Source of the DNA: Blastocladiella emersonii ATCC 22665
Lineage: Eukaryota; Fungi; Blastocladiomycota
NCBI GenBank assembly: GCA_025594325.1
Contig: JANHCV010000001.1
Location: 4,030,001 to 4,094,000 of the forward strand
Direction: 5' to 3'
Length of the DNA: 64,000 bases
Shown: piece after piece, positions 2-53,868 of the stretch
Layout: each line of letters begins with the position of its first letter
How positions within the stretch are numbered: position 1 is the first letter of the stretch
Notes under the pieces: generated by a model
What the model was told of the DNA's origin: nothing
The model's input: the letters and a program-made list of their open reading frames with translations, nothing else
Databases searched by the model: none
Translations under genes and position numbers: made by a program

Positions 2-3000
2 ACGGCGCTCATCATCGAGCGCGTCCACCGGTTCGGCTCCGAGTGCGCGCACTCGTGCCGGTGGGACGACTGCGTCGTGTTCAACGTGACGCCGACGTCG
101 GCTGTGCTGCTGATCGACGACAAGCGGATCCCCGTCGAGTGCCCCGGCCAGGCCTTCGCCGACTTCCTCAACGGCTGGCTCGCGGCGGTCCGCAGCCCGC
201 TCGGCGTGATGCTGCAGGACTTTGCGTCGCGCGAGGGCACGCGCGTCGGCAAGGGATCGCTGGTGCAGGTCCAGGAGGAGCGCGCGCCCTGGGTCCTCGT
301 CACGGCGCGTACCGGCCCGTTCGCCAACGTGCCCGTGTGGATCCCGCGCACACACGTCGAGTATCTCGTCGAGGGGACCCGCGCCCCGGGTATCGCCGAG
401 AACAAGCTCCCGCTGCGCATCCTCGTCGCGATGCGCCAGCTCGAGATGCCCGGCGTCGAGCTCGGCGCCGTGCTCGCCGATATGCTCAACAAGGGTAGCG
501 GCGTGCCCATCGCCGCGCCCGGCGGGACGTGGGGCCCGACGTTTGCGTTCCAGACGATCCAGCGCGGCGGCAACGGGTCGCCGCAGACCCAGTCCCCGCA
601 GACGGCCTCGCCCGTCCCGGGCGGCACCATGGCCACGCCGCCACGCCAGCTCCAGGGCACAATCTCCGGCGGCCAGTTCAGCGGCGCGCCGGGTGGGACC
701 GTCAAGCGCAAGGCGCCCGGCCCGCCGCCGGGCTCGTACGGCACCGTCAGCGGCGGGCACCCGGGCTACACGGCCGGCGGCGGTGGGACCGTCAGCGGGA
801 TGCCGCCGTCGCAGTACGGCACCGTGTCGGGCGGGGCCCCCGCGTACCCGACGGCGTCGGTGCAGCAGGGCTCGCCCGGCGCGTCGTACTCGACCAGCAC
901 GGTCATGTCGGTCGTCGGCGACCTGCGGCCGTACGGCAACAACAGCAACGACCCGTTCGCAAAGCCGGGCGGCGGCGATGGTAGTGGCGAGAAGGGCAAG
1001 CAGCAGCAGCCGGCGGCGCGGCTGGTCCCGACGATTGAGGTGCCGCCGCTCAACTCAGTGCACGTCGGCGACAACTCGATCGAGCAGTACGCGAGCCAGT
1101 ACTACGAGACCAAGTCGGGTAGTATATTTGGCAAGAAGAAGGGCGCGTTCGACCAGAAGATGCTCACCTACTCGGATGTACGTCGCGTCGGCGCGGTCAT
1201 GAAACGTGACTCTGACTGACTCCGCAAAACCATTCTAGACCCCGCTCAAGAAGCCGCTGACGCGTTCGGCGTACGCCGAGGTCCGCGACACCAAGACGGC
1301 GCTCGAGACGTCGACGTGGATCATGACGTACATGGGCGACTTCAAGGCCAAGGGCACGACGCAGCTCGAGGCGGCCAAGTTTGTCATCGAGAACGCGCTC
1401 TCGAGCTCGGCGCTCGTCGACGAGACGTACTGCCAGATCGTCAAGCAGATTACGCAGCACCCGCGGCCTGAGGGGTACGCTGCCATGGCCATTGCCGTCT
1501 CCCGCACACGAATGCTGACCATATCCCCTAAAACCGTGTAGCGCGCTGCTCGGCTTCCGGCTGATGAGCATGTGCGCGGCGTTCCTGGCACCGAGCGACG
1601 ACCTATTCTCGTCCATGTGCCGGTTCATGCAGCAGCAGCTGCGCGGGACGACGGACCCGGCGCTGGTCGCGCTCGTCAACTTCGTGTACTCGAACATGTA
1701 CAAGACGATCAAGGTCGGGTGCCGCAATCTCGGGCCGAGCCGCGAGGAGCTCGAGGCGCTGCACGCCAACGCCCTCATCAAGTTCCGCGTCGAGCTGCCC
1801 GACCGCACCGCGCGCACCTACCTCATCGACTCGTTCACGGTCGGGTCCGACATCCTCAACAAGCTCGAGGAGCGGTACCAGGTCGGCGATTTCGCGCACG
1901 ACTTCGGGCTCGTCATCGACGGCGGACCGCGGACCGGCAGCGGCGTGCTCCCGCTCGTCCCCGTCCTCGAGACGGACCGCCTCGCCGACATTCTGTCGCT
2001 CGCCGAGCACCTCGGCAAGGCCAACGCGGGCGGCGAAGACGGCGACGACAGCGACGGCGAGGGCGAGGGCAAGAAGGCCGCGGCCACTGGGTCGGGCGGC
2101 ACGGCGACGCCGGCGCCCGCGCGCGACCCGCCGCGCGTCGTGTACATGCACAAGTACTGGTCGAGCGCGGGAGCGGGGTCCTCGCGGCAGCTGCGCACGA
2201 GTGACGAAGACCAGGGCAAGGGCAGCACGTCCAAGCTCAAGCAGCTGGGCAACTCGTCGACGGGGCCCGACGCGCACCTGCCGCCGCTGATCGTGGCGGG
2301 GCTCCCGCTCCTATACTCTGCGCCGCTCTTGGAGTGGACGTTCCACCACCTCGCGGGCGCCTTCATCCGCGGCGACCTGATCTCGGCGCTCGAGCTCAAG
2401 CCCAACGCGCAGTCGGAGCTCGTCTACCTCATGGCGCTGCTCGGCGTCGCGCTGTCGCCCGACGACCTGCTCGAGGTGGTCCCGCCCGTGCTCCTCGCGC
2501 CCGGCCGCGAGTCGGGCGTGATCGTCCGCGCCAAGATCGAGAACCAGCTGCACGACTGGAAGGACGCGCAGACGGTGCGGCAGCTGACGGCGGCCAAGAA
2601 CGCGAGCGCGCACGCGCAAGGGCTTGGCGGCGCCAAGTGGGGCAGCACGGGCAACATGCTCAACGACGGGCCCGGCGGGGCGGGCACCTCATCGGCGTCG
2701 CTGCCCATGGGCGCGACGGGCCGGCGCGCCAGCGCCAAGGCGTCGGCCGTCAGCGCGGCAGCGGTCCCGGCCATCTCGCTGCCCGAGCTCGCCAAGCGCG
2801 AGTTCATTGACCGCACGCGCGCCACGTTCCAGTACTTTGGCGCGTTTCCGTTCCACGTGCGCGCGGCCGCCGACGCGCGGTTCGCTGACGGCGGGCTCCT
2901 GTTCGTCAACGAGCACGGCGTCATGATCCTCGACGAGAAGTCGCGCAAGCTCGTCATGTCGGTCGACTACGACGAGCTCGTCGAGACCGAGTGCCAGCAG

Positions 3001-3453
3001 GACGAGTTCACGATCCGCACCCAGAACATGCTCCAGAAGCGCATCATCCGGTTCCAGACGCTCCAGGGGTTCATGCTGCTCGACGTGATCGGCCACTACA
3101 AGGCCGCGTACGTCACGGCCAAGGCCAAGCAGCAGCAGTCGGCCGCCGCCGCTGGGACGACCATGGGCGTGGCCAAGTCTCCGTCGAACCCGCAGCTCTC
3201 GCAGATGCAGCAGGGCCAGCCACCGCAGCACCAGCAGCAGCAGTACGGCGGCCACGGGTACCAGCAGCAGCAACAGCAGGGCCAGATGCCGTACGGCCAG
3301 CAGTACCCGCAGCAGCCGCCGCAGCAGCAGTACCAGCAGGGCCCGCCGCCCAAGCTGCACTCGGCGTCCATGATCTCCGGCTCGATGCCCAACCTCGCGG
3401 CCATGGACCCGTACAACTCGGTGCGCGGGTACGGCTCGGGGCCTGGGCACTGA
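2..3453 (+). CDS. SH3-MyTH4-FERM protein (myosin VII/XXII-type tail); 5' end lies outside the window
   Basis: Frame is open from base 2. SH3-like segment (LQDFASREG...KGSLVQVQEERAPW...WIPRTHVEYL), MyTH4 (LVDETYCQIVKQITQHP; LMSMCAAFLAPSDDL), FERM-like F1/F3 segments and a Q/P-rich tail. GT-AG introns 1178-1238 and 1475-1541 join the ORFs in frame. Confidence 0.75.
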
Positions 3454-10212: not shown

Positions 10213-11666
10213 TTAGGCAATCGCGCACACGTCGTCGAACCCGCATACGACCACCTCGTCGTCCTCGACGCGCACCACCACCTCCTCGCGCTTCTTGTCC
10301 TTGTCGATGATCTGGCCGCGTACACCCAGCAGGTCGTCGCGGTCGCCGCGCAGCTTGCGCGGGACGCGGACCACGCGCACGAGCCCGTCGATACTGGGGA
10401 CCGTGGTCTCGAGCGCCTTCTGTGGGACGCCCTCGAGCAGCGAACGCCGCGAGTCCTCGACCTCGACCACCGACACGCCGCCCGGCAGCACGTCGACGAT
10501 GCGCGCCTTGCGCTCGTAGTACTTGCCGCCCGCCAGCGACTTGGACACGATGCGTACACGCAGGTTCGGGCGCACCCAGATATCGCCGGGCGACAGGATA
10601 GACGTTGAGGAGGACGAGCTCGCAGCCGGGTGCTGTTTCGCCTTGGCCTCGCGCTTGGCCGCCTCGGCGTCGTACTCGGCGGGCGAGAGGAGCTTGAGGT
10701 CACGCGCGTCGACCTTGACGAGGTCGCCGTTCGCCGCGAGCTCGACGCGCGCTAGCTCCTTGTGGTGCATCAGCTCGCGCACGACGCCCAGCATCCCGGC
10801 GTGCCGCCCGTGCGTGACCAGAATGTACCCGCCGACGGCCAGCACGCGGCGTGCCTCGAGCTTCTCGTCGACGGTCACGTAGTGCCGCACCTTGCCGTTG
10901 GCGTCGGTCGGCAGCTCGTACGCGGGCGCGTCGGCACGTCGCCGCTTGCCCGATGCGGTCGGCACGTAGTCGGGCGTCGGTTGCGCGCCGAGGCCGAGGA
11001 GCGATGGACGCGGGATGTACTGGATGGGTTTCACGAGACTGGTTGATGGATGGATGGGGTGGTTAGTTGAGCGTTTCGTGTTCGTGGTGGTGTGGGCGTG
11101 AAAGCGTACCCGTTCTTCTGATTACGACCGATAGCCTGGCCCTCGGACCAGCCCATGCTGCGGAGCATCGCGACGCCAAAGTCGGCGATCGGTTTGGCTT
11201 CGTAGTCCTCCATCGAGCACTACGTCGCGGACACCGAGTCAGCGGGCGGATTCGGAGAAGCTTGTAACGACGCGAAGCAGCGTACGTGTTCGGGCAGGTC
11301 CTGGATCGCCTCCTCGAGCTCGCCGCGCCCCTTCGTGAGCAGCGGTGCATCCCTTGGTGCCGTCGAGATCTCGTACGGCTCCTCGCTGTCACCGTCCTTG
11401 GTAGCGGCGGCGCCCGACTCGGTAGCCGCGGTAGCGTCCCCGCCTCGTCTCCGCTTGGTGCCCTTGACCAGGAGGCCGTACTTGCCGGCAATGTCGCCGC
11501 CGGTGAACTCGCTCTCGCCGTACACAACGGTTTCGGGTGGTGGCGGAGCCGCAGCGGCGTCGCGGGAAGGGGATGGCGGCGCTTTCGTCGGCGACGACGC
11601 CGCGGTCGGCTTCGCCTTAGATGGTGATGGACGGCGGTCAGATTGCATGGTGTCGCTGCGTTGCAT
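10213..11666 (-). CDS. SPP2: G-patch and KOW domain splicing factor (Spp2/GPKOW)
   Basis: G-patch (DFGVAMLRSMGWSEGQAIG), KPIQYIPRPSLLGLGA and two KOW segments (WVRPNLRVRIVSK; LETTVP...RGQIIDKDKKRE). Introns 11220-11285 and 11039-11109. Confidence 0.88.
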
Positions 11667-11831
11667 CGAGTCTAGTGTCAAGTGAAGGTGTTGCGTAGCG
11701 AGTCCTGGAGAGGAGCAGCGCTCATGCCGATGTCGGCGCGCTGGTCGGCACGAGCGGTGAACGCGACCGACGGCCAAGTCGAAGACGACAACGACTCCGC
11801 TCTCCTTCCCCTCAACTGATGAAGCTTCACC
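11667..11831. promoter_or_regulatory. Bidirectional promoter region between SPP2 and CHL1
   Basis: Only 165 bp separate the two divergent start codons. Both ends are conserved in the diverged copy at about 54319-54465. Confidence 0.6.
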
Positions 11832-14608
11832 ATGAACCATGCAGCGAATGGACTGGCAGCAACAGCGGCAACAAACTCTTCCGCGGCCTCGGCCGTGATC
11901 CCGGCAGGGCGGGACTACGGCTTCCCGTTCCCGCCGTACTCGATCCAGGTCGGCCTCATGGACACGCTGTACCGCGTCCTCGACCAGCGCGGCGTCGGCC
12001 TTCTCGAGAGCCCGACGGGCACGGGCAAGTCGCTCTCGCTCATCTGTGGCAGCTTCACCTGGCTTCGCGACAACTTGGACAATTCGGACGTCTTGGTCAA
12101 CGTCAACGAGACAATCTTGCTTGGCTCGGAACCTGCAGCAGTGGCACATGTAGCGACAGAGAGCACGTCTTTGTCAAACGAGCCGGCTTGGATCCGCGAG
12201 CGCGCCGCGAAACTGGTCCGCGACCGCAAGCTGGAGCAGGTCCGGCAGTACCGCGCCGCGGTCCAGGCTCGGATCAACAAGGTGAGGGCCTCGTCGCGTG
12301 CGTCACGTCACAATGACGGTAGCGAGGACGGCGCGGCACCGAAACGTCGAAGGGGTGCCGCCGCCAAGAAACCGAGCGCGAGCGACGTTGACGACGACGA
12401 ACTCGTCATCGACTACGACTCGGACACGGACACGTCCACTACAGCGACAGCCACCATCGACGGGCTCCAGCTCACGGGCAAGGCGGCCGAACTCACCGCC
12501 GCGCTCGCCAAAATGCGCGGCGCGGACGAGGCCGAGGACCCAGACGCCGATATGAAGCCGCCCGACCTCCGCATGCCGCAAATTCTCTACGTGTCGCGCA
12601 CCCACTCGCAGATCAGCCAGTTTGTGCGCGAGTTCCGCGGCACCAAACACGCGGCCGATTTCCCCGTCATCTCGCTCGCGTCGCGCAAGAACTTGTGTAT
12701 CAACGACACGGTGCTCAAGGCCTCGCGCGGGTCGGCGTCGCGCATCAACGACATGTGCCTTGACCTGCAGAAACAGGCGGCGGGGACGAAGGGTGACGCC
12801 AAGGCCAAGGCCAGCAAGGGCTGTCCGCACCTCGAAAAGGGCATGACGTCCGCGTTCCGCGACCACGCGCTGGCTGAGGTGCACGACATCGAGGACTTGG
12901 CTTCGCTCGGCCGCCGGCTCAACGCGTGTCCTTACTACGGCGCGCGAGCTGCAGTCGACGCCGCTTCACTCGTCGCGATGCCCTACACTGCTCTCATCTC
13001 GAGCGACACGCGGTCCTCTCTCGGCGTACGCGTCCGCGGCAACGTGGTCGTGGTGGACGAGGCGCACAACCTCGCCGACGCCATTAACCAGGCGCACTCG
13101 GCCGAGGTCGACGGTGCGCAGATTGAGCGCGGGTACAACCAGCTCGCGCGGTACCTTGCCAAGTACCGCAACCGGCTCAAGCCCGGCAACCGCGTGTATG
13201 TCCAGCAGCTCATGGCCGTGCTCGCGGCCGTGCACGGGTTCCTCAAGAAGCGCGCTGCGCCGCCGGCGGGCACGGCCAAGACCTCCGAGCTCATGCACGT
13301 CGACGCCTTCATTTTCGCGCTCGAGGTCGACCACATCAACCTGTTCAAGCTCGCCACCTTCTTACGCGACAGCCAGCTCCCGCGCAAGCTGCTCGGCTTC
13401 GTCGAAAAGTACGAGGCGCCGCCCGCCGGTACTGCGACGAGCGACACCATGGCGGCCGACACCATGTCGCGGCACATCTCGCCGCTGGCCGTGTTTGAGC
13501 GGCTGCTCACGAAGCTCATCGCGCCCGACGCGGACGGCCGCGTGCTCTACCTCGCTCCCGCGGGCTCTGGTCCGCCGACGCTCAAGTACCTCGCGCTCAA
13601 TCCGGCGGGCCACTTTGCCGACATTGTGCGCGACGCGCACGCGCTCGTCTTCGCTGGCGGTACCATGCAGCCCGTGTCCGACTTTACCGACTTTTTGATA
13701 CCGGACACGTTCGGGAAGCCGCTTGAAATGTACTCGTGCGGGCACGTCATCCCGCGCGAGAATCTCGCGGCGCTCGTCGTGCCGCGCAGTCCCGCCGGCC
13801 GTACGATCCGGTTCACGCTCGAGGGACGGAAGGATCCGCAGCTGGTACGCTCTACTTGGCCTCGCATTGCGACATGTGCGTGCTAACCGCGCCTTGCGTA
13901 GTTGCCGGACGTGTGCCAGACGATCTGCAACCTCGTCAACGTAGTGCCGCGCGGCATGGTCGTATTCCTGCCCTCGTTCCAGCTGCTCGACGACATGACC
14001 AAGGCGTTCCGCGAGGAGGGCTACGCGGCTCGAATCGAGCGCAAGAAACGCGTACGGTTCATTTCCGCGCTCACCGCGATCCGATCTCACCCTCGAGCAT
14101 CACGTAGATCTTCACCGAGCCGCGCGAGGCCGTCGACCTCGAACGCGTCCTGCGCGAGTACGCGCAGCACATCGACGAGTCGCCGACGAGCGGCGCGCTG
14201 CTCCTGTCCGTGGTCGGCGGCAAAATGTCCGAGGGCATCAACTTCAGCGGCCCACTCGCGCGGTGCGTGGTCATGGTCGGCATCCCGTACCCGAACCTCG
14301 GCTCGGCCGAGCTGGAGGAGAAGCTCAAGTACATTGACGGGCTGCGGGCTGGTGCGTCCAAGGAGTTCTACGAAAACCTCGCGATGCGCGCCGTCAACCA
14401 GTCGATTGGCCGCGCGATTCGCAACCGCATGGACTACGCGGCAGTGGTCCTTGTCGACGTCCGGTACGAGGGCGCGGCGGTGCGCCGCAAGCTGCCCGCG
14501 TGGATCGCCGAGACCATGGCGCCGCCTGACCCGGGGCGGCCGTTTAGCCACGCGGTGCAGACGATTGCGCGGTTCTTCAAGATCCCACGAGATGGTGAGC
14601 AAAACTGA
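11832..14608 (+). CDS. CHL1: Chl1/DDX11 Fe-S XPD-family DNA helicase
   Basis: Q motif FPFPPYSIQ, Walker A ESPTGTGKS, SRTHSQISQF, Fe-S cysteines (SRKNLCIN, DMC, CPH), CPYY, VDEAHNL, GGTMQP, VGGKMSEGINF, VNQSIGRAIR. Introns 13845-13901 and 14052-14107. Confidence 0.95.
14538..14607 (+). repeat. Left copy of ~70-bp direct repeat (the functional CHL1 3' end)
   Basis: 62/70 identical to 21815-21882 by manual alignment (6 substitutions, 2 gaps). Confidence 0.85.
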
Positions 14609-17049
14609 TGGATATTTGTCGAATGATTAAAGGTGGCAGTGTAACACGTCGTTTTGAGGCAAACGCCCTCGAGCGCAGCCGTCCGCCAGCGCGCGCGCCG
14701 CTTTAGGATCATGCGCGCGAGCTGAGCGTGTGAGGTATTCCTCGACGCGGGCTGAGCGTGCAAGGTGTTCCTCTACGACTAGAGTTCGAGCTCGAAAGGT
14801 TGCGGGCAGTGAACGGCGGCGGGAGCACCAGGGCGAGTGCGGAAAGTGGCTCGCTCGGCTTGGGGTCACGCCGACGTGAACGACGCGACCCTGCTGCAGG
14901 CGCACGTGACCCCGGCTTAGCCGCTTGAATTTGAGATGCACCCGAATATTTTTTTTCTGAGCATTGGATCGTCATCAGGGACCCTCAGGGACCCCGGAAA
15001 TGTAAAAATCGCCGAGTCGGCATGTCGGGGTGTCGAGAAGTCGTCCGACCGTGCAAAGTTGAAAAAAACTTTCGGGTTTGGTCGTTTGGACGAACTCGGC
15101 CCGAAACGGCACTTGGGACTTGGCTTCTTGAATTGGACTATCCCTTCGATCGGGCTGATTTTGCGCACATGTACTCAGTATGTGCTAGGAGCATTATTCG
15201 CGGTGGTCTGAGAATTTCTGAGATTTATATGCACTGGGTAGACCGGTGCTCAAAGTTAAATACGCGTAAGAATTCGGCATGGTGTGGGCCACGCCGCTTT
15301 TGGGCTTCACTTCCCGGAACGCCTCACCCCACCTACATCGCACCACCACCCACACCACCACCATGACTATGCCTTGAACAGCGCAACGCTGACTAGCTAC
15401 AGATACCATTCCCCGTAATATACAGCGTTCGGTCTTCTGCCGGCCATCAGCAGTCAGTTGCTCGCCATGAGCGAACGAGCGAGCGTTGCTGGACGCCTCG
15501 TGCAACCCGTCCCGTTGATCTCGGGCCTGATGTGCAACACGCAGGCGCTGGAGCTCCGGTAAAGGACGGAACACGCGCGAACAGTGATCAGGGTCGGGAT
15601 GAACGGGCCGTCTCGCACTTGGCACGTGCGCGAAAGAAACGCGTCGACCCGCAACACGTCGTGCTCCGAGTCCGCCCGCCCGCCCGTGCCCGCACACACT
15701 CGCGCCCGATCCGATATCGCAGGTCGGCCCCATCGCGCGACGCGCGCGTCGCCCGGGCGCGTTGCTGCGCCACCATGGCCATGATCGCACGTCGTGTTCG
15801 CGCGCGCGTTGCAGAACAGTGCTTGCGCGGGCAAAAATCTCCCACGCGTTTGGGCGATCCGCTCGCAGCACAGTCACAGCGTGCGCACGCAACCCCGGGA
15901 GTCCCCGACGGGGTCCAAAGAAAGCGACGCGGCAACTGACCGACCTGGGGCCGGGCCAACGCGTGAGTCGACCACCGTGGCGAGGCTATGGCCGTCGTCG
16001 CCCGCCACACCGCACCAAGGTCGGAATCGACGACAAGGCATGATTGAGAGAGATGGGTTGCGGTCCGTTCTGCGCAACCTTTCGCCCTCGGGACTCGGGA
16101 CAACGATATACATGGACCAATGTGATTTTGTGATCATGGACTTGGAGCAATGGATTCGCGTGATTGAGTGAGCGAGGAGCGATTCCCGACAAGATCTGCG
16201 CCGTTAGTGCATGTGGGTAGCCCTCGAGGACGACGCGTGGCCGCTCGCGCCGACCTGACCTACCGCGACGGCGCTGATCCTCGGCTCTCGGCCACGACCA
16301 CGACGCGTGCTCACTTGGTGCAACCTCGCGCCCTGGCGCGTCGGCGTGGCGGGCCGGCCTGATCAGCGGGCGTACGTCTTCCCTCGGGTTTCCGCGGCGA
16401 TCCGACGCACCGGCCCGAGAAGCGGCCGGATCGCCAACCAGCACGACCGTTTCCTCCTTCACACGGCGCGGTCCGGAGTTGGTCGCGGTGAGTGAAAACA
16501 CCGCGGCGACGATGCGATCCACGGCCGGCCGGTCCACCACGACCATGGCCATGGCCGCGGCCACGGTGATCGGCCTCGACGCGTTGCGGCGCTCACACGG
16601 CGGCGCCCGGCCCGTCCGTTGTTCGCCATCTCGCGCGCACTCTGTGATCCGCGTGCACGTGCAGGCTGTCCCCCGAGGTCATGTGCTTCGCTGCACGACG
16701 GATTAATCGCAGCAAAACATCACGATCACGGTCGCAGGGGGGAAGGGAGACACTGTTTCCCGCCGCTTGCGGCTTGAACTGTATCCCAAACCGCTCGCCC
16801 ACCATTTTTTTCACGACAACAAGGCAACTGACAGGAACATGTACCACGGGGCTGCTGGCCACTCGGCCGGCCGGGGTGCGCTGGGTGCAGGCCGGCCGGC
16901 TGTCCCCTCCCGCCCGCCCGCTCGCTCGCTGCCCCCGCGGACCCTCCGCGGCTCCTTCTCCTCGGCCGCCCCGACACCCCCAAACTGCTCCCTGTTCGAG
17001 CATAAGGATCGGATCATACTACGTATCAACAAACGCATCACCTGTCAAC

Positions 17050-20000
17050 ATGTGGAGCTCGATCTCCGCAGTGTGGACCGGTGTCAAGTCGCTCCTCGGC
17101 TTCTCGCTCCGCCCCGTCGCGGTCGAGGAGGCCGCCGCCGCCGAGACTTCGGTCGAGGCCGTGGCCGTGGCCGTCGCCGAGGAGCAGCAGCAGCAGACGT
17201 ACGTTTCTCGCTTCTCGACGCCGACCCGCCCGCCCGATCCGATCCGATCACGTATAGACACGCCTTGCCCTGCTCCACCCCCACCTCTACTCTGCTCGTC
17301 CGCCCGATCATGGTGCACGGCCGCGCCGCGCTACGGCGCCCCTCCGTGCCGTCGCGCCGCCGAAGCACGGGCGGAATGCGGCGGCCGGCGGCCGGCGGCC
17401 GGCACCGCCCGATCGATATTCGGGCGGGCGCGAGCCATTGTTCGCGGCGCGCCACCCGCGCGGTGCGGCGCGACGCGTCCGCTGTGATCGCGTCGGTTAT
17501 TATTCATTATCACCTCGCCGTGTCCGCCCTCCCCTCTCCGATCCCACCGCTCCTCCGCATGAATCGCATGGCGACTGACACTTGCCGCAACGCCGACGTC
17601 ATCCAGGGCTGCTGCCGAGTGCGCCGTTGAGGGCGCGTGCGGCGACCGCGAGGTCGCCGCGGTCGAGGGTGTCGCCGCCGGCGCCGAGGTTGCGCGCGGC
17701 GAGACCATCATCTCGGTCGAGGCCATCATGCACGGAAAGGGGCCCGTGCAGGCCGCGAGTACCGAGAGCGCCACCGAGGGCGCGTGTGGCGGTGAGTCGA
17801 TTGCCGCCGTCGCGGACGTGGTCAAGGAGACGATCCCCGCCAAGGTCGTCGTCCTCGCCAAGCCCGTCGGCTCCGAGCTCCTCGTCGAGAGCTCGGCCGA
17901 CGAGTCCGAGATCCAGGGCGCCACCGAGGGCGCGAGTGCTGCAGCGGCCGTCGTTGAGGCGGGCGAGGTCGCGTGCATCAACGTGGCCGTCGCCGAGGCG
18001 GACGAGGTCGCGTGCAGCAGCGTGGCCGCCGCCGAGTCCATTGCGGAGGGCTCGGCCGGCGTGCCCGTGGTCGAGCGCGCCGTTGAGGGCGCGCGTGTCG
18101 ACGCCGCGGTCGCCGCCAAGGTCGTCGGCAAGAAGTCGTGCGTCACGGCGGCCGTCACCACCGAGGGCATGAGCGACGACGACCGCAAGGTCGGCGCCAT
18201 CATCGTCAAGGCCCCGGCCGGCGAGACCGGCACCGAGGCCGCCATCGTGGGCTCGGGCGACACGGTCGTCGTTGCCGAGGCCGTGTGCAAGGAGGTCGAC
18301 GCCGCCAAGGTCTCCCTCGCCGAGCCTGTCGATCGCGAGGCCGCCGCCACGGGCTGCTCGATCGACGACGGGTCCGCGTACCAGCGCACCAAGGGCGCGT
18401 GCGACGCCGACGGCGACACGGTCATCTCCATGGTCGCCGCGGCCGAGGAGAAGGAGGAGCTGCAGACCACGACCCGCACCACCACGACCCGCGTCACCGC
18501 GTGCCCGGTCAGCAGCAGCAGCAGCAGCAAGGCCGACGGCGAGATCCTCGCCAAGACGTCGGTCAACAAGGCCGCCGCTGAGGCCGCCGCTGAGGCCGCC
18601 GCTGAGGCCGCCGCTGAGGCCGCCGCTGAGGCCGCCGCTGAGGCCGCCGCTGAGGCCGCCATCAAGGAGTCGTCGTGCGGCGCGAGCACGGCTGCGTTCA
18701 CCGAGTGCGACGCCAACAACTACACGTACGGTACGGCCTCGTACGCCGCGACCACCGGCGTCATCAAGGGCACGAGCGGCAACGACAAGATCGTCAAGGT
18801 GCTGCCCGACGAGACCGTTGCGGGCGGGTGCACGACCGCACGCTCGGGCACCGAGCTCGTCATCACCAAGGGCGCGAGCGCCGCTGCCGCGGCTGCCGGC
18901 GAGAGCGAGCCGGTCGTCCTCGTCAAGTCCATCATCGTGCCCGCCGCGCACATGGCGCCGCACGCCGTCATGGAGCCGACGGCTGCCGAGAACACGATCA
19001 AGGAGAACCAAGACCAGCAGGAGCAGGCCGAGAAGGCCACCACCACCACCTTCTGCACCGTCGCCGACGCCGCCGCTCGCGACTCGGGTATCCTCGCTCC
19101 GACACCCGCCAGCTCGATGACGGTCGAGCGCGCCACCTGCACGGCGCAGCAGCAGCAGCAGCCGGGCGGGTCCTCGAGGCCGTTTGCGGGACCGTCGCGA
19201 CGACCGCGGGTCCCGCGACCGATTCCGTCGCCGAGCAGCTCGAGCTGTTCCCGAACGACGCCATGGAGCGCATCATCGACGCTGGTGTCGCCGCCCGTAC
19301 CGGCCCATCCAGTGGCGGCATCGCCAATGCCGGCGTCGACATGGTCCAGCTCGTCGTGCCGACGCGCCAGGTGATCCACGAGCCCAAGGAACGCGGGTCC
19401 ACCACAGCCGCCACCGACGCCGCCGCGGCCGTGGAGCTCCTGCGACGGTCTACGGACCAGCGCGAGGCCGCGAGGTACGCTTTCGAGCTATCGTGTCCCG
19501 ATGCGCGATCTCCCAACACTAACGCTGGCGCGATTCGTAGAAGTCTCGAGGCCGCCAACAACATTGCCGTCGCGACCGCCTCGGCCATGGTCGCCGCGCC
19601 GTCGCCGGCCTCCAGCGACTCGGCGCCCAGCAGCGTGCACGGCAAGCTGATCGACACGAGCGCGGCTCCCGCCGCCGCCGCCGTCAAGTTCGAGCGCACC
19701 GAGATGAGCGGCCAACCCGTCGCTTCCGCCAAAAGGCACGTATCCCTCTCTCTCTCTCGGCGGTTTGCTCCAACGGCAGTCACGCTAACCAAACCTCGAA
19801 CCCTGTGTGTAGTAGCGTCAAGCGCGTCGAGGCGGCGCAGGCCGAGTCGGACATCGGCACGCACGGCGGCGGCCACGTCGTCGGCAAGGTCGGCAAGCTC
19901 GAGCACGTCGCCGCGTCTAGCGGTGCCGCGCAGCCGCACTGCGAGATCAAGGCGCAGGGCGCCAAGCCGGCGGGCATCACGCGCCACCAGCCCGACGACG

Positions 20001-21439
20001 GCGCCGTGGCCGCCGCCGCCCCTACGCCGGGCGCAGGCGCTGCGGGTGTAGGGCGGTCGCTGGCCGCCGACCCGTCGACGTCGTCGTCGTCGTCGCAGCC
20101 TGGTCTCGGCGGCAAGCACGGCCGCAAGGAGAAGAAGAAGAAGCGGTGGCCGAAAATGCCGTGGTCGAAGAGCCGCAGCGGCGCGTCTCGGGTCCACGAC
20201 GACTCGACCACCGCCCGTCGCGCCTCGGCGTCGCCCTCGCCGACCTCCTCTACCTCATCCTCCTCGGCCGCGACTGGTCTCGCGGCGCGTGCGCGTCGCG
20301 CTGCGGCCAAGGTCCTCGTCGGCATCACGCACCTTTCGCGCACCTCGCGCTCTTCTCGCAGCCACGGCAACGGACCGACCGGCACCGAGGAGGACCACGC
20401 TCGTTCGTCTGGCCCGTGCCTCGAGAGCGACGCGCCTGCGCCTGCGCCTGCGCCTGCGCCTGCGCCTGCGCCTGCGCCTGCGCCTGAGCTGCCGCAGCTC
20501 CTCGCGGACCTCGTCAACGGCAGCGACAAGGGTACCATCACCCTCACGTCGGTCCTCGACCTCATGGACGAGCTCGGCGATCATCTGGCTCACGCAGCCA
20601 CCACGCTTCCTGCTCGGGTCGGCTTCGCGCCGCTGGGCATCAAGGCGCAGCAGGAGATCCAGGGCGGCGGCATCGGGCCCGGCCGCGCCGTCCAGCACCG
20701 CGATCCGGGGTGGTACATTGAGCTTCTGCGGTTCCTCGCCAAGTACATCCCGAACACGCTCGTCGACCTGCTCGGCGTCTCCATTCGCGGCCTCTCGGCG
20801 CCCCTCATGACCGAGGCCCACGCGATCGCCCTCGGCAACGTCATGGAGAAGCACCGCGAGGCGATGGAACTTCACGCCCGTGCCCTCAGCGACGAGCTGT
20901 GCCGCCCCGACGTGCCCGAGGCGCAAGTCCCGGCCCACTTCCCGCTCGACAGCACCAACGCTCGGCTGCGCATGCCGGCGCACATCGAGGCGCTCGACGA
21001 CGAGCTCGACTGCGCGCTCCGGAAGTGCATGTCGCCGCAGACCATCGACGATCTCGGCGACTACATGTGGTACATGCACCAACTCGCGGTGTACCTGGCC
21101 ACGTACGTGCCGGGCCTCGACTCGCGCACTCCTGGGGGTATTTCGCGTGCTCTCAGGGTCGTGGCCGCGATCTCGGCCCTGCAGATGACTCGGGTCGATC
21201 CGTTCGCTGCAGTCAAGATGGACGGCGGCATCGTGGATTGCCATCTTCTCCCCGAGAGCGCCCAGTCCTGTCTTTTGTTCGCGCTGGTCCTCCTGGGCCA
21301 CTGCGAGCGCACCATGGCCGTGCCGAACCGCGATCCCGCGGCGGCCACGGATTTCTTCTCTTTTGCCAACATGATTCCCGCCATGGGCGGCGGTGCGGCC
21401 GTGCTTGGACCCTCTGCGACGTGCCCGTTCGATTGGTGA
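17050..21439 (+). CDS. Orphan multi-exon protein (~1260 aa): amphipathic N-terminus, Ala/Glu/Val-rich degenerate repeats, Lys-rich NLS-like patch, ~300-aa helical C-terminal domain; copy A
   Basis: Model: exons 17050-17198, 17607-19087, 19150-19474, 19541-19735, 19813-21439 (3777 nt, all phases compatible). Codon usage is host-like. Intron 19088-19149 is weakly supported and could instead be a frameshift; intron 19736-19812 needs a GC donor. Confidence 0.6.
18571..18654 (+). repeat. Coding 12-bp tandem repeat (GCCGCCGCTGAG)x7, encoding AAAE
   Basis: Counted directly: 7 units in A, 7 in B (50184-50267), 4 in C (58609-58656). Confidence 0.95.
20432..20485 (+). repeat. Coding hexamer repeat (GCGCCT)x9, encoding AP
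   Basis: 9 units in A, 11 in B (52045-52110), 13 in C (56754-56831); the last-exon ORFs are 544, 548 and 552 aa. Confidence 0.95.
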
Positions 21440-21814
21440 TGGATGGGCCTCGGCTGCTGCTCATGGCAGTCTCAGCTCGCGCGCGCGCGCTACTCTTTCT
21501 GCAGCATCGGCTCGTGGCGGCGAGCCGCCGCCGTTGTCAGCGGCTGCGCGCGCGCAGTTCTTTGTGTGTGTGTGTTTAGTTCTTGTCATTGTCAATAGCA
21601 TGTTCAGTACGATCAAAGCCTCTCGTCAATGATTCAGATCCGGCGTTTGCCTCGTGCATCGATGTGCATCAATGACGGAAGCTGAAGAGCAACTGAGAGA
21701 AGGACGGCCGCCGGCCATGGACGCGTCCGAGCCCCTCGGCCGCCGGCCGCGGACGTGCTGCGATAGCATGTGACGAATGTACGTACCATCGCGCGTTCCT
21801 TATGTAGGCCTGTT

Positions 21815-21882
21815 GGCCGTTCGGCCACGCGGGAGACGATTGCGCGGTTCGTCAGGATCCCGCGAGCTGGTGAGCAAAACTG
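21815..21882 (+). pseudogene. Decayed copy of the CHL1 3' end (right direct repeat)
   Basis: Translates TIARFVRIPRAGEQNW versus CHL1 TIARFFKIPRDGEQN*. The stop is lost (TGA to TGG) and there is a 2-nt deletion. Confidence 0.85.
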
Positions 21883-21928
21883 GTACATTTTGATGATGGA
21901 GCAAACCGTGCGGGGCGAGAAAGTGGGA

Positions 21929-23784
21929 TTAGAGTACAAACACAGCGTTCATGTCGATCTCGTGGCCCGAAGAGAGCTGCGGAATCTGCGAGTACTCCTT
22001 GGACAGGATGGCGCGAGTCGACGCGAGCAGCTGCGCGTACGACTGGCCCGGGTTGGCGCGCAGACTCTTGAGCAGCGCGTACGACATGGCGCCCGTGGCC
22101 TTGCCGTCGATGTGGGCGTCGGCGCTGGTCTGGTTGTCCTTGCACCCGCTCATCATGAGCACGCGGGCGGCGGTGCGCTTGGCATCGAGGGCGCGCTTGA
22201 CCTTGTCGTCGTTCGGAGCCGCGGCGAGGTTGCCAACCAGCTTGAAGGCGCCCATGAGGGCACCGGCCTTGTTCTTGGTGAGCAGCATCTTGCCGATGCC
22301 CATAGCGTCCGACTTGACGCGCGCGGCCTTGGTCTTGCCCTGCTTGACCGAGCCGTCGGGCATGTAGATGAGGGGCAGGTCGAACACTACAAACATGGTG
22401 AGCGCTGGTTAGCACTTGTCAGGGGAGCAAGTCGGGTAATAAAACGAACCGGTCGCGGAGTGGCAGCAGTCCATGATGATGGTCACTACAGATGCATTGC
22501 GAGATCGAGGTGAGTCGTGAACCCGATGGGTGTTATGGAGGGAGACCGTACTGTTGGCGCCGGCAGGCAGCTTAGCGACCAGAGCGTGGAGCTCGTCGTC
22601 GACAATCATGCCGGCCTTTTCGTGGTCAACGGGGTAGATCTAGAGCGCCCAAGTGCAGGCAGTCAGGTCAGTCTTGCGCCAATATTCGTGCGAGAATGTG
22701 GAGAAACGCACCGTCTCGTCGTAGCCGTCATCTTCGTCGCCGTCGAGATCCTTGGCCTGACCGCCGTGGCCGGAATAGTGCAAGAAGAGCGAGTCGCCGG
22801 GCTGAGCGCCCTGGATGAGCCAGTTGATGGCGGCGAGGATACTCTTGCGAGTGGGCCAGAGCCACTCGTTGCCGCGGTGCTTGGGCTCGTCGGTCAGGAC
22901 AACCATGGTCTCAGACGACTCGGTGAAGCCGTACTGCTCCATGATGAAGCGCTTGATGTTGTTTACGTCCTAGACGACGCAGATGGAGAGGTCAGTGGCG
23001 AGGAAGGGTGCGGCGATCGGACCACACGATGGCGAAGCGTACCGCGTGGCACCCGCGCAGCTCGCCGCGCTGGCCGACGTAGTTGATGCCAATGAGCAGC
23101 GCCTAATCGACGGGCGTCAGGGTCAAGCTTCTCGACAAGTGCGCAAACTCACGCACCTTCTTGCGACCCGTCAGACGCGGCACGCCGTTGACCCAGGCCA
23201 CGTTGGTCGCCGCCGATGGCACATTCTGCGAGTTGGGCACCTGCTGGTACTGGTGGTGCAGGGGCTCCGTGTACTGGACCTGGTTGGGCGTGTACTGCGC
23301 AGGAGCCGATCCGGGGCCGTAGGCGGGCGCGGCGCCCTGCTGGGGCATCTGGCCCGTCGGGTTGCGCGGCGGGAGCGAGGGCGGAGGCACGCCGTAGAAG
23401 CCCTGAGCAGGAGGGCCCTGCGGCGGCTGGTGCTGGTACTGCTGCTGCGGAGCGGGCGGCATGCCGGGGAAGCCGCCGGGCGGAGGACCCATGGGCATCC
23501 CACCGTTGAAGCCGGGCTGCGGCATCTGCGGCGGCTGCTGGTAGCCACCGTTGTAGGCGGGAGGGGCTACGTGGGGTCGTCGGCGAGTGAGCGCCCAGCT
23601 GCAAGGTGATGGCCTCGCATGGACTCGACGCACCATACTGCGGCGGCTGCTGGTACTGATGCTGGGGCGGCTGCTGGTACTGGTACTGCGGCTGCTGATA
23701 CTGCTCTTGCTGCTGCGGGCGCGGCGGCTGCTGCGGCGGCGGGTTGTTGTTGGCGGGCCGATGGAAGCCAGGGAAGCCGGACAT
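21929..23784 (-). CDS. MCA1: Type I metacaspase (peptidase C14) with Q/P/Y-rich N-terminal prodomain
   Basis: Catalytic His in FLHYSGHGGQ and Cys in IMDCCHSAT; DLDGDEDDGYDET; FDLPLIY; SGCKDNQTSAD; QIPQLSS. Multi-exon; internal boundaries not all mapped. Confidence 0.93.
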
Positions 23785-44253: not shown

Positions 44254-44480
44254 CGCTGTGCTCGCAGGCTGCCCGCACCCGCTTCCATCACCTAGCAAAC
44301 TCGAGCGCGGAGACTATAAGTACCTCGAGCGTCCCCGCGCTCCCATCTCGCTGTTTCCCCAGGATCACCAACCATCACCCTCTGCTACGCACCGACGACG
44401 GACGACGGCCCTCGCACATCACCCTAGACCACCCGACCACCCGACCACCGACCACCAACAACTCGTACAACCTCACCAAG

Positions 44481-46043
44481 ATGGGTCTCTACGACGGCTT
44501 CTCGGCGGCCGAGAAGAAGAACCTGACGATCTACATTGGCGGCATCATGTGCTATAAGTTTGCGCTCGAGACGCTGACGGGGTGCATGTCCAACATTGTG
44601 CTCAACCGGTACAAGGTGGCGCCGGCGGCGACGTGGGGCACGGTGGTGTCGGTCAACTACGCGGCGCAGTCGATTGGGTCGCTGCTCGTGTCGCCGCTCA
44701 TCAAGCGGTGGCCGACGTCGCGCGTGCTGGCCATGTCCATCTTCCTGTTCGGCCTGCTGGTGGCGATCGTGCCCGTGCTCGAGGCGACGACGGGCGGCGG
44801 GTCGACGGGGCTCGGCAACGAGAAGACGTACAAGGCGGGCGACTGGAACCCGTTCATCGTGGCGGTGCTGTTCCCGATCGTCGGCATCTTCCACGGCATC
44901 ATCGAGCTGATCCGCCGCGTCATCCCGCGCGACATTGTCGGCTCGGACCCGTCCAAGCTCAAGCGCATGGACTCGACGGTGCACATCTTCTACGAGGTGG
45001 CCGGCACGACGGGCGCGCTGCTCTCAAAGTACTGGATCGCCTACTTCAACTACGCCTACTCGCTGGCCCTGATCCCGATCGCCTTCACGGGCGCGGCGCT
45101 CGTGTGGTCGCGCATCAAGGACGCGACGAGCGAGGCGTACGAGGGGCCCTCCAAGACCAAGCGCGTGTCGGGCAACTTCTTCTCCGAGTTCTTTGCCATC
45201 GTCAAGGCCTTCTTCTACTCGGTGTGGGTCGGCCTCAAGCTCGTGTGCTCGCACCGGTCGCTCGTGTGGCTGATCCCGGCCTACACGCTGCCGCTCGTCC
45301 TGCACCGGTACCTCGAGAACGTGCTGTTCGCGCACTACGCCAACTTTGCGCTGTCGACGGGCTCGTACCAGCAGCTGCTCGTGTCCGGGTCCAACTTTGG
45401 CGAGCTGCTCGGCGCGCTGTTCGTGCTCCTGTTCGCCGACTCGGTCAAGACGCCCATCCCGTGGCTGCGCCTCGACGCCCTGACGCTGCTCTTCGTGTGG
45501 ATCCTGCCGCTCGCGACGCCGTTTGCCAACATCGAGGGCTGGGTGTGGTTCCTCGCGGCGATCGCCGTGCCCGTGTCGTTTGGGTGGGCCGCCGGTGACG
45601 TGTCGCTGGTCGCGTACGTGCAGTCGCGCCTGGCCAAGATCGAGGACTCGGAGGCGACCGTGTCGCCGCTCGGCTCGGTCATGTCGTTCCTGTACGTGCT
45701 GTACATTATCATCTTCGCGCTCGTCAACACGGCCATCGGCAAGGTGCAGGACTCGTTTGTCGCGGACCTGCTCAAGAAGTACGGCTCGGCCAAGAAGTTC
45801 CCCGCGCTGGCCGGCCTCAAGCCGACGCAGGACGCCATGTTCTACACGGCGGGTCTGGTCATGTCGTGCGCCGGCGTGGTCGTGTTCCTGTCGACGTTCA
45901 TCCCCAAGGGCGCGTTTGCGCTCAACCCGGACACGCTCGACGACGACGAGAGCGACCGCGCCCTCGCACAGCACCTCGAGCACGACAAGGCCTCGGAGAC
46001 GGCCAAGGACCGCAAGGAGATCATCGAGGCCATGGTCGCCTAA
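44481..46043 (+). CDS. MFS-type transporter (about 11-12 TM, intronless), substrate unknown
   Basis: 520-aa single ORF with alternating hydrophobic helices and an MFS motif-A-like loop (SPLIKRWPTSRVL). Confidence 0.75.
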   Translation: MGLYDGFSAAEKKNLTIYIGGIMCYKFALETLTGCMSNIVLNRYKVAPAATWGTVVSVNYAAQSIGSLLVSPLIKRWPTSRVLAMSIFLFGLLVAIVPVLEATTGGGSTGLGNEKTYKAGDWNPFIVAVLFPIVGIFHGIIELIRRVIPRDIVGSDPSKLKRMDSTVHIFYEVAGTTGALLSKYWIAYFNYAYSLALIPIAFTGAALVWSRIKDATSEAYEGPSKTKRVSGNFFSEFFAIVKAFFYSVWVGLKLVCSHRSLVWLIPAYTLPLVLHRYLENVLFAHYANFALSTGSYQQLLVSGSNFGELLGALFVLLFADSVKTPIPWLRLDALTLLFVWILPLATPFANIEGWVWFLAAIAVPVSFGWAAGDVSLVAYVQSRLAKIEDSEATVSPLGSVMSFLYVLYIIIFALVNTAIGKVQDSFVADLLKKYGSAKKFPALAGLKPTQDAMFYTAGLVMSCAGVVVFLSTFIPKGAFALNPDTLDDDESDRALAQHLEHDKASETAKDRKEIIEAMVA

Positions 46044-46373
46044 GGTCGGTCGCCTTTTGTTCTCTGTCTCTACTGGTGTGCTCCTTCCTCTTCCCCAAAG
46101 TTTTGTGTGTGTGTCTCTCGTTGAGCCTGCGCGTGTCCCTCCGTCACGTCGCTGCTCGCGATCGTTTCTTCCCTCCACCCCTCTACCTCGCGCCCTTGAG
46201 CGCAGCGTGATTTGATACATAGACCCCCTCGTGTTTTTGCAAACGTCTTCTTCGCCTCCGTGAATCTGATGGTGTGTTGCAAGTGGCGAGCTTGGTTCTG
46301 TCATGCTCGCGATCAGGTCGCGGATCAAACAAGCCGCCTGCGAGCGCGCGCGCTCAAGAGCTGAGCGTGCAAG

Positions 46374-49300
46374 CAAGGTGTTCCTCTACGACTAGAGTTC
46401 GAGCTCGAAAGGTTGCGGGCAGTGAACGGCGGCGGGAGCACCAGGGCGAGTGCGGAAAGTGGCTCGCTCGGCTTGGGGTCACGCCGACGTGAACGACGCG
46501 ACCCTGCTGCAGGCGCACGTGACCCCGGCTTAGCCGCTTGAATTTGAGATGCACCCGAATATTTTTTTTCTGAGCATTGGATCGTCATCAGGGACCCTCA
46601 GGGACCCCGGAAATGTAAAAATCGCCGAGTCGGCATGTCGGGGTGTCGAGAAGTCGTCCGACCGTGCAAAGTTGAAAAAAACTTTCGGGTTTGGTCGTTT
46701 GGACGAACTCGGCCCGAAACGGCACTTGGGACTTGGCTTCTTGAATTGGACTATCCCTTCGATCGGGCTGATTTTGCGCACATGTACTCAGTATGTGCTA
46801 GGAGCATTATTCGCGGTGGTCTGAGAATTTCTGAGATTTATATGCACTGGGTAGACCGGTGCTCAAAGTTAAATACGCGTAAGAATTCGGCATGGTGTGG
46901 GCCACGCCGCTTTTGGGCTTCACTTCCCGGAACGCCTCACCCCACCTACATCGCACCACCACCCACACCACCACCATGACTATGCCTTGAACAGCGCAAC
47001 GCTGACTAGCTACAGATACCATTCCCCGTAATATACAGCGTTCGGTCTTCTGCCGGCCATCAGCAGTCAGTTGCTCGCCATGAGCGAACGAGCGAGCGTT
47101 GCTGGACGCCTCGTGCAACCCGTCCCGTTGATCTCGGGCCTGATGTGCAACACGCAGGCGCTGGAGCTCCGGTAAAGGACGGAACACGCGCGAACAGTGA
47201 TCAGGGTCGGGATGAACGGGCCGTCTCGCACTTGGCACGTGCGCGAAAGAAACGCGTCGACCCGCAACACGTCGTGCTCCGAGTCCGCCCGCCCGCCCGT
47301 GCCCGCACACACTCGCGCCCGATCCGATATCGCAGGTCGGCCCCATCGCGCGACGCGCGCGTCGCCCGGGCGCGTTGCTGCGCCACCATGGCCATGATCG
47401 CACGTCGTGTTCGCGCGCGCGTTGCAGAACAGTGCTTGCGCGGGCAAAAATCTCCCACGCGTTTGGGCGATCCGCTCGCAGCACAGTCACAGCGTGCGCA
47501 CGCAACCCCGGGAGTCCCCGACGGGGTCCAAAGAAAGCGACGCGGCAACTGACCGACCTGGGGCCGGGCCAACGCGTGAGTCGACCACCGTGGCGAGGCT
47601 ATGGCCGTCGTCGCCCGCCACACCGCACCAAGGTCGGAATCGACGACAAGGCATGATTGAGAGAGATGGGTTGCGGTCCGTTCTGCGCAACCTTTCGCCC
47701 TCGGGACTCGGGACAACGATATACATGGACCAATGTGATTTTGTGATCATGGACTTGGAGCAATGGATTCGCGTGATTGAGTGAGCGAGGAGCGATTCCC
47801 GACAAGATCTGCGCCGTTAGTGCATGTGGGTAGCCCTCGAGGACGACGCGTGGCCGCTCGCGCCGACCTGACCTACCGCGACGGCGCTGATCCTCGGCTC
47901 TCGGCCACGACCACGACGCGTGCTCACTTGGTGCAACCTCGCGCCCTGGCGCGTCGGCGTGGCGGGCCGGCCTGATCAGCGGGCGTACGTCTTCCCTCGG
48001 GTTTCCGCGGCGATCCGACGCACCGGCCCGAGAAGCGGCCGGATCGCCAACCAGCACGACCGTTTCCTCCTTCACACGGCGCGGTCCGGAGTTGGTCGCG
48101 GTGAGTGAAAACACCGCGGCGACGATGCGATCCACGGCCGGCCGGTCCACCACGACCATGGCCATGGCCGCGGCCACGGTGATCGGCCTCGACGCGTTGC
48201 GGCGCTCACACGGCGGCGCCCGGCCCGTCCGTTGTTCGCCATCTCGCGCGCACTCTGTGATCCGCGTGCACGTGCAGGCTGTCCCCCGAGGTCATGTGCT
48301 TCGCTGCACGACGGATTAATCGCAGCAAAACATCACGATCACGGTCGCAGGGGGGAAGGGAGACACTGTTTCCCGCCGCTTGCGGCTTGAACTGTATCCC
48401 AAACCGCTCGCCCACCATTTTTTTCACGACAACAAGGCAACTGACAGGAACATGTACCACGGGGCTGCTGGCCACTCGGCCGGCCGGGGTGCGCTGGGTG
48501 CAGGCCGGCCGGCTGTCCCCTCCCGCCCGCCCGCTCGCTCGCTGCCCCCGCGGACCCTCCGCGGCTCCTTCTCCTCGGCCGCCCCGACACCCCCAAACTG
48601 CTCCCTGTTCGAGCATAAGGATCGGATCATACTACGTATCAACAAACGCATCACCTGTCAACATGTGGAGCTCGATCTCCGCAGTGTGGACCGGTGTCAA
48701 GTCGCTCCTCGGCTTCTCGCTCCGCCCCGTCGCGGTCGAGGAGGCCGCCGCCGCCGAGACTTCGGTCGAGGCCGTGGCCGTGGCCGTCGCCGAGGAGCAG
48801 CAGCAGCAGACGTACGTTTCTCGCTTCTCGACGCCGACCCGCCCGCCCGATCCGATCCGATCACGTATAGACACGCCTTGCCCTGCTCCACCCCCACCTC
48901 TACTCTGCTCGTCCGCCCGATCATGGTGCACGGCCGCGCCGCGCTACGGCGCCCCTCCGTGCCGTCGCGCCGCCGAAGCACGGGCGGAATGCGGCGGCCG
49001 GCGGCCGGCGGCCGGCACCGCCCGATCGATATTCGGGCGGGCGCGAGCCATTGTTCGCGGCGCGCCACCCGCGCGGTGCGGCGCGACGCGTCCGCTGTGA
49101 TCGCGTCGGTTATTATTCATTATCACCTCGCCGTGTCCGCCCTCCCCTCTCCGATCCCACCGCTCCTCCGCATGAATCGCATGGCGACTGACACTTGCCG
49201 CAACGCCGACGTCATCCAGGGCTGCTGCCGAGTGCGCCGTTGAGGGCGCGTGCGGCGACCGCGAGGTCGCCGCGGTCGAGGGTGTCGCCGCCGGCGCCGA

Positions 49301-53328: not shown

Positions 53329-53506
53329 TTGGCCGCCGGCCGCGACGTGATATCATCCTTCGTACGAGTCCCTGCGAGGCCCACGATCCCGCTTTGCTCA
53401 TTGATCTTTGAGTACACGAGGATCAGTTTGGGACAAATCTAATAGTGTGTGTGCGTCGGAAAAGCCCAGATTCGCGGTAGCTCTTTCCCAATAGCGCTCG
53501 CCAATC

Positions 53507-53835: not shown

Positions 53836-53868
53836 AAGCCAAGAGCTACGTGAAAACGCTCTTCCCAT

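Follow-up and report, generated by a model that had tools for sequence, protein, structure and literature searches.

The stretch of Blastocladiella emersonii ATCC 22665 DNA analysed here (64,000 nucleotides of the 5.14-Mb contig JANHCV010000001.1, assembly GCA_025594325.1, positions 4,030,001 to 4,094,000 of the forward strand; hereafter the window) contains three near-identical copies of a ~7-kb unit, termed A, B and C. Self-BLASTN and a three-way MAFFT alignment place the core of unit A at 14760-21716 and unit B at 46373-53341, both on the plus strand, and unit C at 62467-55523 on the minus strand. A fourth, older copy, D, lies outside the window. Each unit consists of a 2.3-kb leader followed by one orphan gene of ~1250 amino acids with five exons. 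The G+C content of the window is ~65%. Three near-identical copies, the third inverted, had been described in the initial annotation of the window, with the unit at 14761-21703; the alignments confirm them, and these coordinates agree with the core common to all three. The assembly was built from PacBio HiFi reads and polished with Illumina data, and its genes were annotated ab initio with funannotate (PMC9730499). The CHL1-like open reading frame at 11823-13883 matched a protein of this strain at 98%, a value lowered by the stop-to-stop reading of the query, and the locus encoding that protein is 100% identical to window 1832-24782.

Over the ~6.96-kb core, identity among the three copies exceeds 99.9% by substitutions in the three-way alignment. 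Only five substituted bases separate them, together with three repeat-length changes. Two substitutions occur in A alone (T at 19089, A at 19275) and three in B alone (A at 52545, TT at 53329-53330). Copy C has lost 36 bp in a 12-bp repeat that encodes (AEAA)n, and a second repeat, which encodes (PA)n, comprises 9 GCGCCT units in A, 11 in B and 13 in C. These coding microsatellites, located at 18569-18660 (12-bp repeat) and 20432-20486 (GCGCCT), change faster than any other site of the unit. The left boundary of copy A is spanned by a tandem duplication of 30 bp (14716-14775; 83% identity), of which B and C hold the second 30-bp unit only, with a 4-bp CAAG insertion.

The ends of the matching blocks differ among the copies. 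A and C are colinear over ~14746-22123, and this full block (plus strand in A; ~99.97% identity by substitutions) takes in a CHL1 3' relic together with the final 64 codons of MCA1. The match between A and B is limited to 14760-21716, and that of B to A stops at 53341, the equivalent of A 21716. Hence the left ends of the blocks are 14746 versus 44304/64535, and the right ends 22123/55116 versus 53341. The left end of the block reads GCTGAGCGTGCAAG and begins with GCTGAGCG; the right end reads GGCCGCCGGCC in B and GTGGGCGTCGGC in A and C (GTCGGC). The inner breakpoint of B falls in the quasi-palindromic, GC-rich motif GGCCGCCGGCC, which overlaps a hairpin-forming pair, recurs 32 bp downstream and is plausibly a template-switch site. 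A small deletion at the inner edge of B was considered and rejected, as local alignment of B past 53341 with the flank of A gave no real homology.

Copy A lies between two intact genes that the initial annotation had named correctly. Upstream is the CHL1/DDX11 helicase gene (11832-14608, plus strand), the 3' 1.4 kb of which is also present in copy D. Downstream is the MCA1 metacaspase gene on the minus strand, of which the stop codon (21929-21931) and the last 64 codons (21929-22123) are inside the A/C block. Between unit A and MCA1, a decayed 94-bp relic of the CHL1 3' end (21815-21905, plus strand) is 80% identical to 14538-14631 and ends 23 bp from the MCA1 stop codon, which gives direct support to the earlier idea that CHL1 and MCA1 were once adjacent.

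Copies B and C are homologous far to the left of the boundary of A and form a palindrome, with two inverted arms of ~9.04 kb (~99.97% identical by substitutions) around a unique spacer of 2181 bp (53342-55522). Arm B (44304-53341, plus strand) contains a major facilitator superfamily (MFS) transporter gene followed by unit B, with orphan gene B at 48663-53064. Arm C (minus strand) contains unit C with orphan gene C (60177-55800) and the second MFS copy, and runs from 55523 to the window end at 64000 and on to 64535, an end mapped with 10 kb of sequence past the window. Each arm carries a complete 520-residue MFS gene and 177 bp upstream of it; the gene has a single exon and encodes the same protein twice (44481-46043 on the plus strand, and 64358-62796 on the minus strand, partly past the window end). 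Unrelated genes border the palindrome, namely a cytochrome-b5-reductase-like gene at one end and a RhoGAP gene at the other. The arms have a sharp outer edge at ~44334. Beyond it, ~110 bp of diverged, clearly homologous sequence comprise two blocks with 35 of 38 matching positions and a common TATA-like block, GACTATAAGTACC. This homology outside the arm edge suggests that the inverted duplication of B and C may predate its apparent divergence of 0.03% and may be undergoing homogenisation.

Within the spacer, segment 55116-55522 is identical to the right flank of A, that is, the CHL1 3' relic and the MCA1 3' fragment. After the equivalent of position 22123 and a further 49 bp, the sequence at C continues into one like 11058-12269 (82% DNA identity), in the same orientation as the orphan gene. 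This relic of the CHL1 5' region and N-terminus (53842-55066; ~82% DNA identity) encodes CHL1 residues 1-158 at 74% protein identity, and a GPKOW-like relic (53482-53835) lies next to it in the inverted orientation. Two genes annotated in the spacer, at 53575-54318 (minus strand, 144 residues) and 54484-55310 (plus strand, 215 residues), have no Pfam match; they overlap the decayed GPKOW and CHL1 N-terminal relics and the piece of the MCA1 3' end, and are probably not real genes.

Copy D is found on the same contig, 530 kb from the window copies, and is 83-97% identical to them. It contains CHL1 residues 485-884 (window 13247-14642, 93% DNA identity), followed by the first 400 bp of the leader (94.6%). 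Relative to A it lacks 15153-17236, where A has its promoter, exon 1 and the first part of intron 1, and the junction shows 4-5 bp of microhomology. Thereafter D matches A from 17237 to ~20330 (exons 2 to 5a) at 83-97%, and past ~20330 its C-terminal domain is only ~30% identical to that of A. With a C-terminal domain so distant, D is evidently a mosaic that arose by ectopic exchange: an A-type 5' segment carrying CHL1 sequence was fused to an older paralogue. A relic of the CHL1 promoter and of residues 6-47 (window 11476-11973, 76%) lies immediately downstream of the D orphan gene, in the same orientation. In the public annotation the D locus is represented by P0122 (KAI9189892.1; L004:10001-15946; JANHCV010000001.1:3,497,907-3,503,852), a chimeric gene model misannotated as "chl1". 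Its CHL1 part keeps only Helicase_C_2, and its orphan-paralogue part has neither a promoter nor an exon 1 of its own.

The orphan gene of copy A extends from an ATG at 17050 to 21439 on the plus strand. Its model was rebuilt from frame-specific third-position G+C and splice signals, and comprises exons at 17050-17198, 17607-19087, ~19162-19474, 19541-19735 and 19816-21439. The resulting protein of ~1253 residues (1253 in the rebuilt model) is close to the spliced orphan product of ~1260 residues first predicted, and the start and stop agree with the public annotation, which gives 1242, 1248 and 1255 residues for A, B and C. The introns have a fungal appearance (GTACGY ... CTRAC ... YAG). Intron 4 (19736-19815) has a GC-AG splice pair (AAG|GCACGT), which is kept in copy D. 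In the alignment of A with D, all 19 indels in exons are multiples of three; the four indels that are not, each of 2 nt, fall in introns 1, 3 and 4 and in putative intron 2, where there is one further indel, of 12 bp. A and D also have introns 3 and 4 in conserved form, including the GC donor of intron 4. This distribution of indels, together with the conservation of the two introns, indicates that the reading frame has been under selection. A frameshifted pseudogene is disfavoured for A, B and C by the same counts (4/4 and 19/19).

Putative intron 2 (19088-19161 in A, with equivalents in B and C) measures 74 nt in A, B and C. The homologous segment of D has 72 nt and is in frame, and the annotation reads through it. 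In A, B and C the two-base offset makes splicing obligatory if the conserved downstream exons are to be reached. Copies B, C and D have a GC donor here; A alone has GT, by the derived C-to-T change at 19089. Two readings are possible: the segment may be an old GC-AG intron, or coding sequence that was turned into an obligatory intron.

The upstream region of the orphan gene, or leader (14746-17049, plus strand, 2.3 kb), shows no coding periodicity, as expected from its original description as non-coding, and has no Pfam, Rfam or tRNA match. Rfam and tRNA scans of the whole window found no RNA gene. The possibility that the leader is an inserted transposon was rejected: the 2.1 kb that D lacks ends in 4-5 bp of microhomology, and with it D is missing its promoter, all of exon 1 and the beginning of intron 1, a pattern better read as a deletion in D.

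Hallmarks of mobile elements were sought in the block. In agreement with the initial annotation, which had reported no DDE, tyrosine-recombinase, reverse transcriptase or Rep/helicase motif, 30 open reading frames on both strands contain no Pfam domain. No transposase, reverse transcriptase, recombinase or Rep domain was found in them; an autonomous partner elsewhere in the genome was not searched for. Comparison of the ends at 14746/14760 with those at 21716/22123 revealed no terminal inverted repeat, no target-site duplication was found, and the ends differ among copies, unlike those of a DNA transposon or a miniature inverted-repeat transposable element (MITE). The unit has no long direct repeats besides the coding microsatellites, and no reverse transcriptase or integrase domain that would point to a retroelement. 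The ends do not fit the 5' TC and 3' CTRR of a Helitron, and no Rep/helicase domain was found in the block, its helicase sequence being limited to a piece of the host's own CHL1.

Segmental duplications are taken here as blocks no shorter than 1 kb and no less than 90% identical, with non-repetitive flanks included and breakpoints specific to each event. The window has two such blocks, of 7.4 kb and 9.0 kb, with more than 99.9% identity by substitutions, besides the older copy at 83-97%, and the copied sequence includes that of MCA1, MFS and CHL1. The inconsistent termini and the co-duplication of neighbouring genes argue for segmental duplication and not for transposition. The copies are probably members of a transposon-independent family of low-copy repeats, which arose by segmental and inverted duplication and by ectopic gene conversion. 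The second of the two origins put forward in the initial annotation, a gene spread by ectopic recombination, is supported as the mechanism by the heterogeneous ends, the mosaic structure of D, the palindrome arms and the relics of sequence from the locus of A (locus 1).

According to the history that we propose, the orphan gene adjoining CHL1 would have been copied repeatedly by segmental duplication and ectopic (non-allelic) recombination, each event having its own endpoints and carrying neighbouring sequence along. Long ago, the region of CHL1 and the orphan gene may have been duplicated through a tandem or permuted intermediate, pieces of the old duplicate landing at the D locus and at the present site of the palindrome (locus 2), where the relics would have decayed to ~76-82% identity. 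More recently, the locus-1 block 14746-22123 would have been written into locus 2, 33 kb downstream, beside the MFS gene, most likely by gene conversion or break-induced copying onto the older, decayed duplicate. Locus 2 is, or would have become, a palindrome with 9-kb arms (B and C) that may be kept near-identical by arm-to-arm conversion.

The direction of this last transfer, from locus 1 to locus 2, is suggested by C, which carries the CHL1 3' relic and the MCA1 3' fragment that are native to locus 1. With D as the outgroup both A-private substitutions are derived, and the copies group as (A,(B,C)). As to the mode of transfer, the near-identical stretch at C stops at the very point where the old relics cease to be colinear, which fits conversion of an old duplicate; within the colinear part, locus 2 now matches A at 99.97%. 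We infer that this step was conversion rather than a fresh duplication, which is its main rival.

Several points weigh against this reconstruction. The structures were read from a single B. emersonii assembly, and the family members outside the window were found through protein look-ups. The diverged stretch outside the arms of B and C is short and might instead represent a promoter motif under conservation or a junction that was templated. Past the ends of the A/C block no such homology was found, and a fresh duplication is possible there. As for the gene itself, the ratio of nonsynonymous to synonymous substitution rates between A and D is ~0.75-1.5, and protein-level selection is thus not demonstrated; the amino-acid sequence appears to evolve about neutrally or faster. 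Finally, intron 2 rests on ab initio models, and if it is left unspliced the proteins of A, B and C are truncated.

The alternative with most to commend it is a fresh copy-and-paste event, which we nevertheless regard as unlikely. Block 14746-22123 would very recently have moved beside the MFS gene without any older paralogue there, a fold-back or template-switch inverted duplication of MFS and the unit would then have made B, and the relics would be older, unrelated debris. The ~99.97% identity with sharp block ends and the lack of diverged homology past the ends of A and C are in keeping with such an event, as is the position of the inner breakpoint of B in GGCCGCCGGCC, the kind of site at which template switching occurs. 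It leaves unexplained, however, the diverged homology that runs ~110 bp outside the outer arm edge of B and C. Moreover, old locus-1 relics (76-82%) stand exactly where the near-identical block stops at C, and likewise downstream of D, as expected if a new block overwrote the colinear portion of an old duplicate.

A tandem or circular (extrachromosomal) intermediate could also account for the order of the relics. It would have consisted of an 11-kb segment (the 5' part of GPKOW, CHL1, the orphan gene and the 3' end of MCA1), pieces of which were re-integrated elsewhere. This is suggested by the permuted junction at C, where sequence resembling 11058-12269 begins 49 bp past 22123 without a change of orientation, and by the order at D, namely CHL1 residues 485-884, the orphan gene, and then the CHL1 promoter with residues 6-47. 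The two permuted junctions differ, however, and an ordinary tandem duplication followed by partial copying explains them equally well. The relics are 18-24% diverged and too old for a reconstruction, and there is no direct evidence of circles. We consider this intermediate improbable. A wider version is a little more doubtful still: the block would have spread through a tandem or circular DNA intermediate without transposon machinery and been homogenised by conversion, as a recombination-driven "self-copying" cassette, the 74-nt intron 2 being perhaps nascent.

Palindromic artefacts occur in long-read libraries. An assembly artefact, in which allelic haplotypes or chimeric reads appear as extra copies or as a false palindrome, would be consistent with the very high identity and with the fact that the genome authors removed duplicated contigs manually and polished with Pilon using 65-bp reads (PMC9730499). 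Against it, the copies all sit within a 5.1-Mb HiFi contig, each bordered left and right by unique sequence; the 2.2-kb spacer of the palindrome is likewise unique, and asymmetric; and the copies have private variants, repeat-length differences among them. Reads with a mean length of 10.5 kb at ~185x can span the spacer and the variants of the arms (PMC9730499), and an artefact is very unlikely. Least credible of all is a non-autonomous cargo element of MITE, Helitron or Pack type, moved in trans by the enzyme of another locus, the first of the two origins put forward in the initial annotation: three near-identical copies and an older one lack an enzyme of their own, and Helitrons and Pack-type elements can capture host gene fragments, but the copies share no termini, have no terminal inverted repeats, long terminal repeats (LTRs), target-site duplications or Helitron-like ends, include fragments or the whole of unrelated neighbouring genes, lie on one contig within 600 kb, and in one case hold a complete unrelated gene and form a palindrome.

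Among known systems, the segmental duplications with non-allelic homologous recombination and interlocus conversion that are described from many eukaryotic genomes offer the closest likeness. They have in common with the B. emersonii family kilobase blocks of near identity, event-specific breakpoints, co-copied neighbour genes, mosaic older copies and no mobile-element hallmarks. The difference lies in the host, a compact 34-Mb genome of an early-diverging fungus, and in the cargo, a species-restricted gene. Ampliconic palindromes, such as those of primate sex chromosomes, whose arms gene conversion keeps identical, have similar near-identical inverted arms, a unique spacer and a sharp arm edge with older, diverged homology outside. 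The arms of B and C are far smaller, conversion between them is presumed, and they have no known link to germline or stage-specific expression. Fungi also have fast-evolving multicopy families that ectopic conversion has shaped, among them the wtf meiotic drivers of fission yeast and subtelomeric families. These resemble the orphan family in lineage restriction, a ratio of nonsynonymous to synonymous substitution near or above 1, coding repeat-length variation and paralogue mosaicism; the orphan family, by contrast, has no sequence or structural similarity to them, is neither associated with LTRs nor subtelomeric, and gives no evidence of drive. Helitrons and Pack-MULEs also carry host gene fragments and, when non-autonomous, have no enzyme of their own, but the block lacks their defining termini, hairpin, terminal inverted repeats and target-site duplications, and its ends are inconsistent.

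The attractive reading of the unit as a new mobile element is thereby corrected in favour of a known mechanism, not a new one. The B. emersonii genome has been described as duplication-poor, with 1.2% of its benchmarking universal single-copy orthologues duplicated (PMC9730499). Within this model early-diverging fungus, the region would represent a small hotspot in which a species-specific family is copied and homogenised by recombination alone, with chimeric, misannotated genes (such as the 1610-residue "chl1") as by-products, and in which a 9-kb palindrome has formed. It offers a useful, tractable example of the expansion of an orphan family, and possibly of an intron becoming obligatory.

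The orphan protein consists of a short N-terminal motif, acidic repeats, a basic linker and a helical C-terminal domain. The acidic part contains ~500 residues of imperfect, cysteine-containing repeats rich in Ala, Val, Glu and Thr (isoelectric point 4.3). The linker is rich in Ser and Pro (isoelectric point 11.5), with a KKKKR patch and the (PA)n run. The conserved C-terminal domain (20486-21436, plus strand) is all-alpha and leucine-rich, with ~280 residues within a stretch of 317, and is the only part that is shared with the deep paralogues P0121 and P0122 (27-35% identity). No convincing transmembrane segment was found in the protein. Our best guess is a soluble, largely disordered protein that is constrained only in its reading frame and its C-terminal domain.

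In an exhaustive phmmer search of 1.84 billion cluster representatives, the C-terminal domain (20486-21433, 316 residues) had only two significant matches, both from B. emersonii. These are P0121, a hypothetical protein of 501 residues on contig 5, and P0122, the protein of 1610 residues annotated as "ATP-dependent DNA helicase chl1" on the same contig, 530 kb upstream. As determined by tBLASTN, the C-terminal domains of A/B/C, D and P0121 are roughly equally distant from each other (about 26-30% identity), which indicates that the family is old within the lineage. Pfam had no match for the orphan exons or the paralogues, and a profile search of the PDB with the orphan protein had none either. 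A word-indexed search with P0122 residues 412-1610 returned only P0122 itself, and one with the domain alignment gave no match; low-complexity candidates dominated both searches, which are thus uninformative. The structure prediction that had been suggested for the protein was carried out on the C-terminal domain. The AlphaFold2 model, from a three-sequence alignment, is all-alpha and of low confidence (mean predicted local distance difference test score of 47), and a Foldseek search of the PDB with it gave no meaningful fold match (best E-value 0.45, template-modelling scores of 0.30 or less). By phmmer, Pfam, PDB and fold searches, with remote homology at the profile level not searched, no homologue was detected outside B. 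emersonii. The orphan genes thus constitute a lineage-restricted, fast-evolving family with at least five members.

The CHL1 orthologues of Blastocladiella britannica (49% identity) and Catenaria anguillulae (55%) have wholly different neighbours, and both species are too distant for this synteny to speak for or against an insertion. No match to the orphan protein was obtained by tBLASTN at either CHL1 locus. In B. britannica (MU624891.1; L002:10787-17185), CHL1 is followed downstream by a gene-free gap of 3.6 kb and then by a protein of 860 residues without a Pfam domain, with no tBLASTN similarity to the orphan protein. Elsewhere in the window, a sequence just upstream of MCA1 (23633-23759) shows a weak inverted similarity (67-71% over ~110-136 bp) to 3181-3349, inside the open reading frame 1519-3450, which probably reflects low-complexity sequence.

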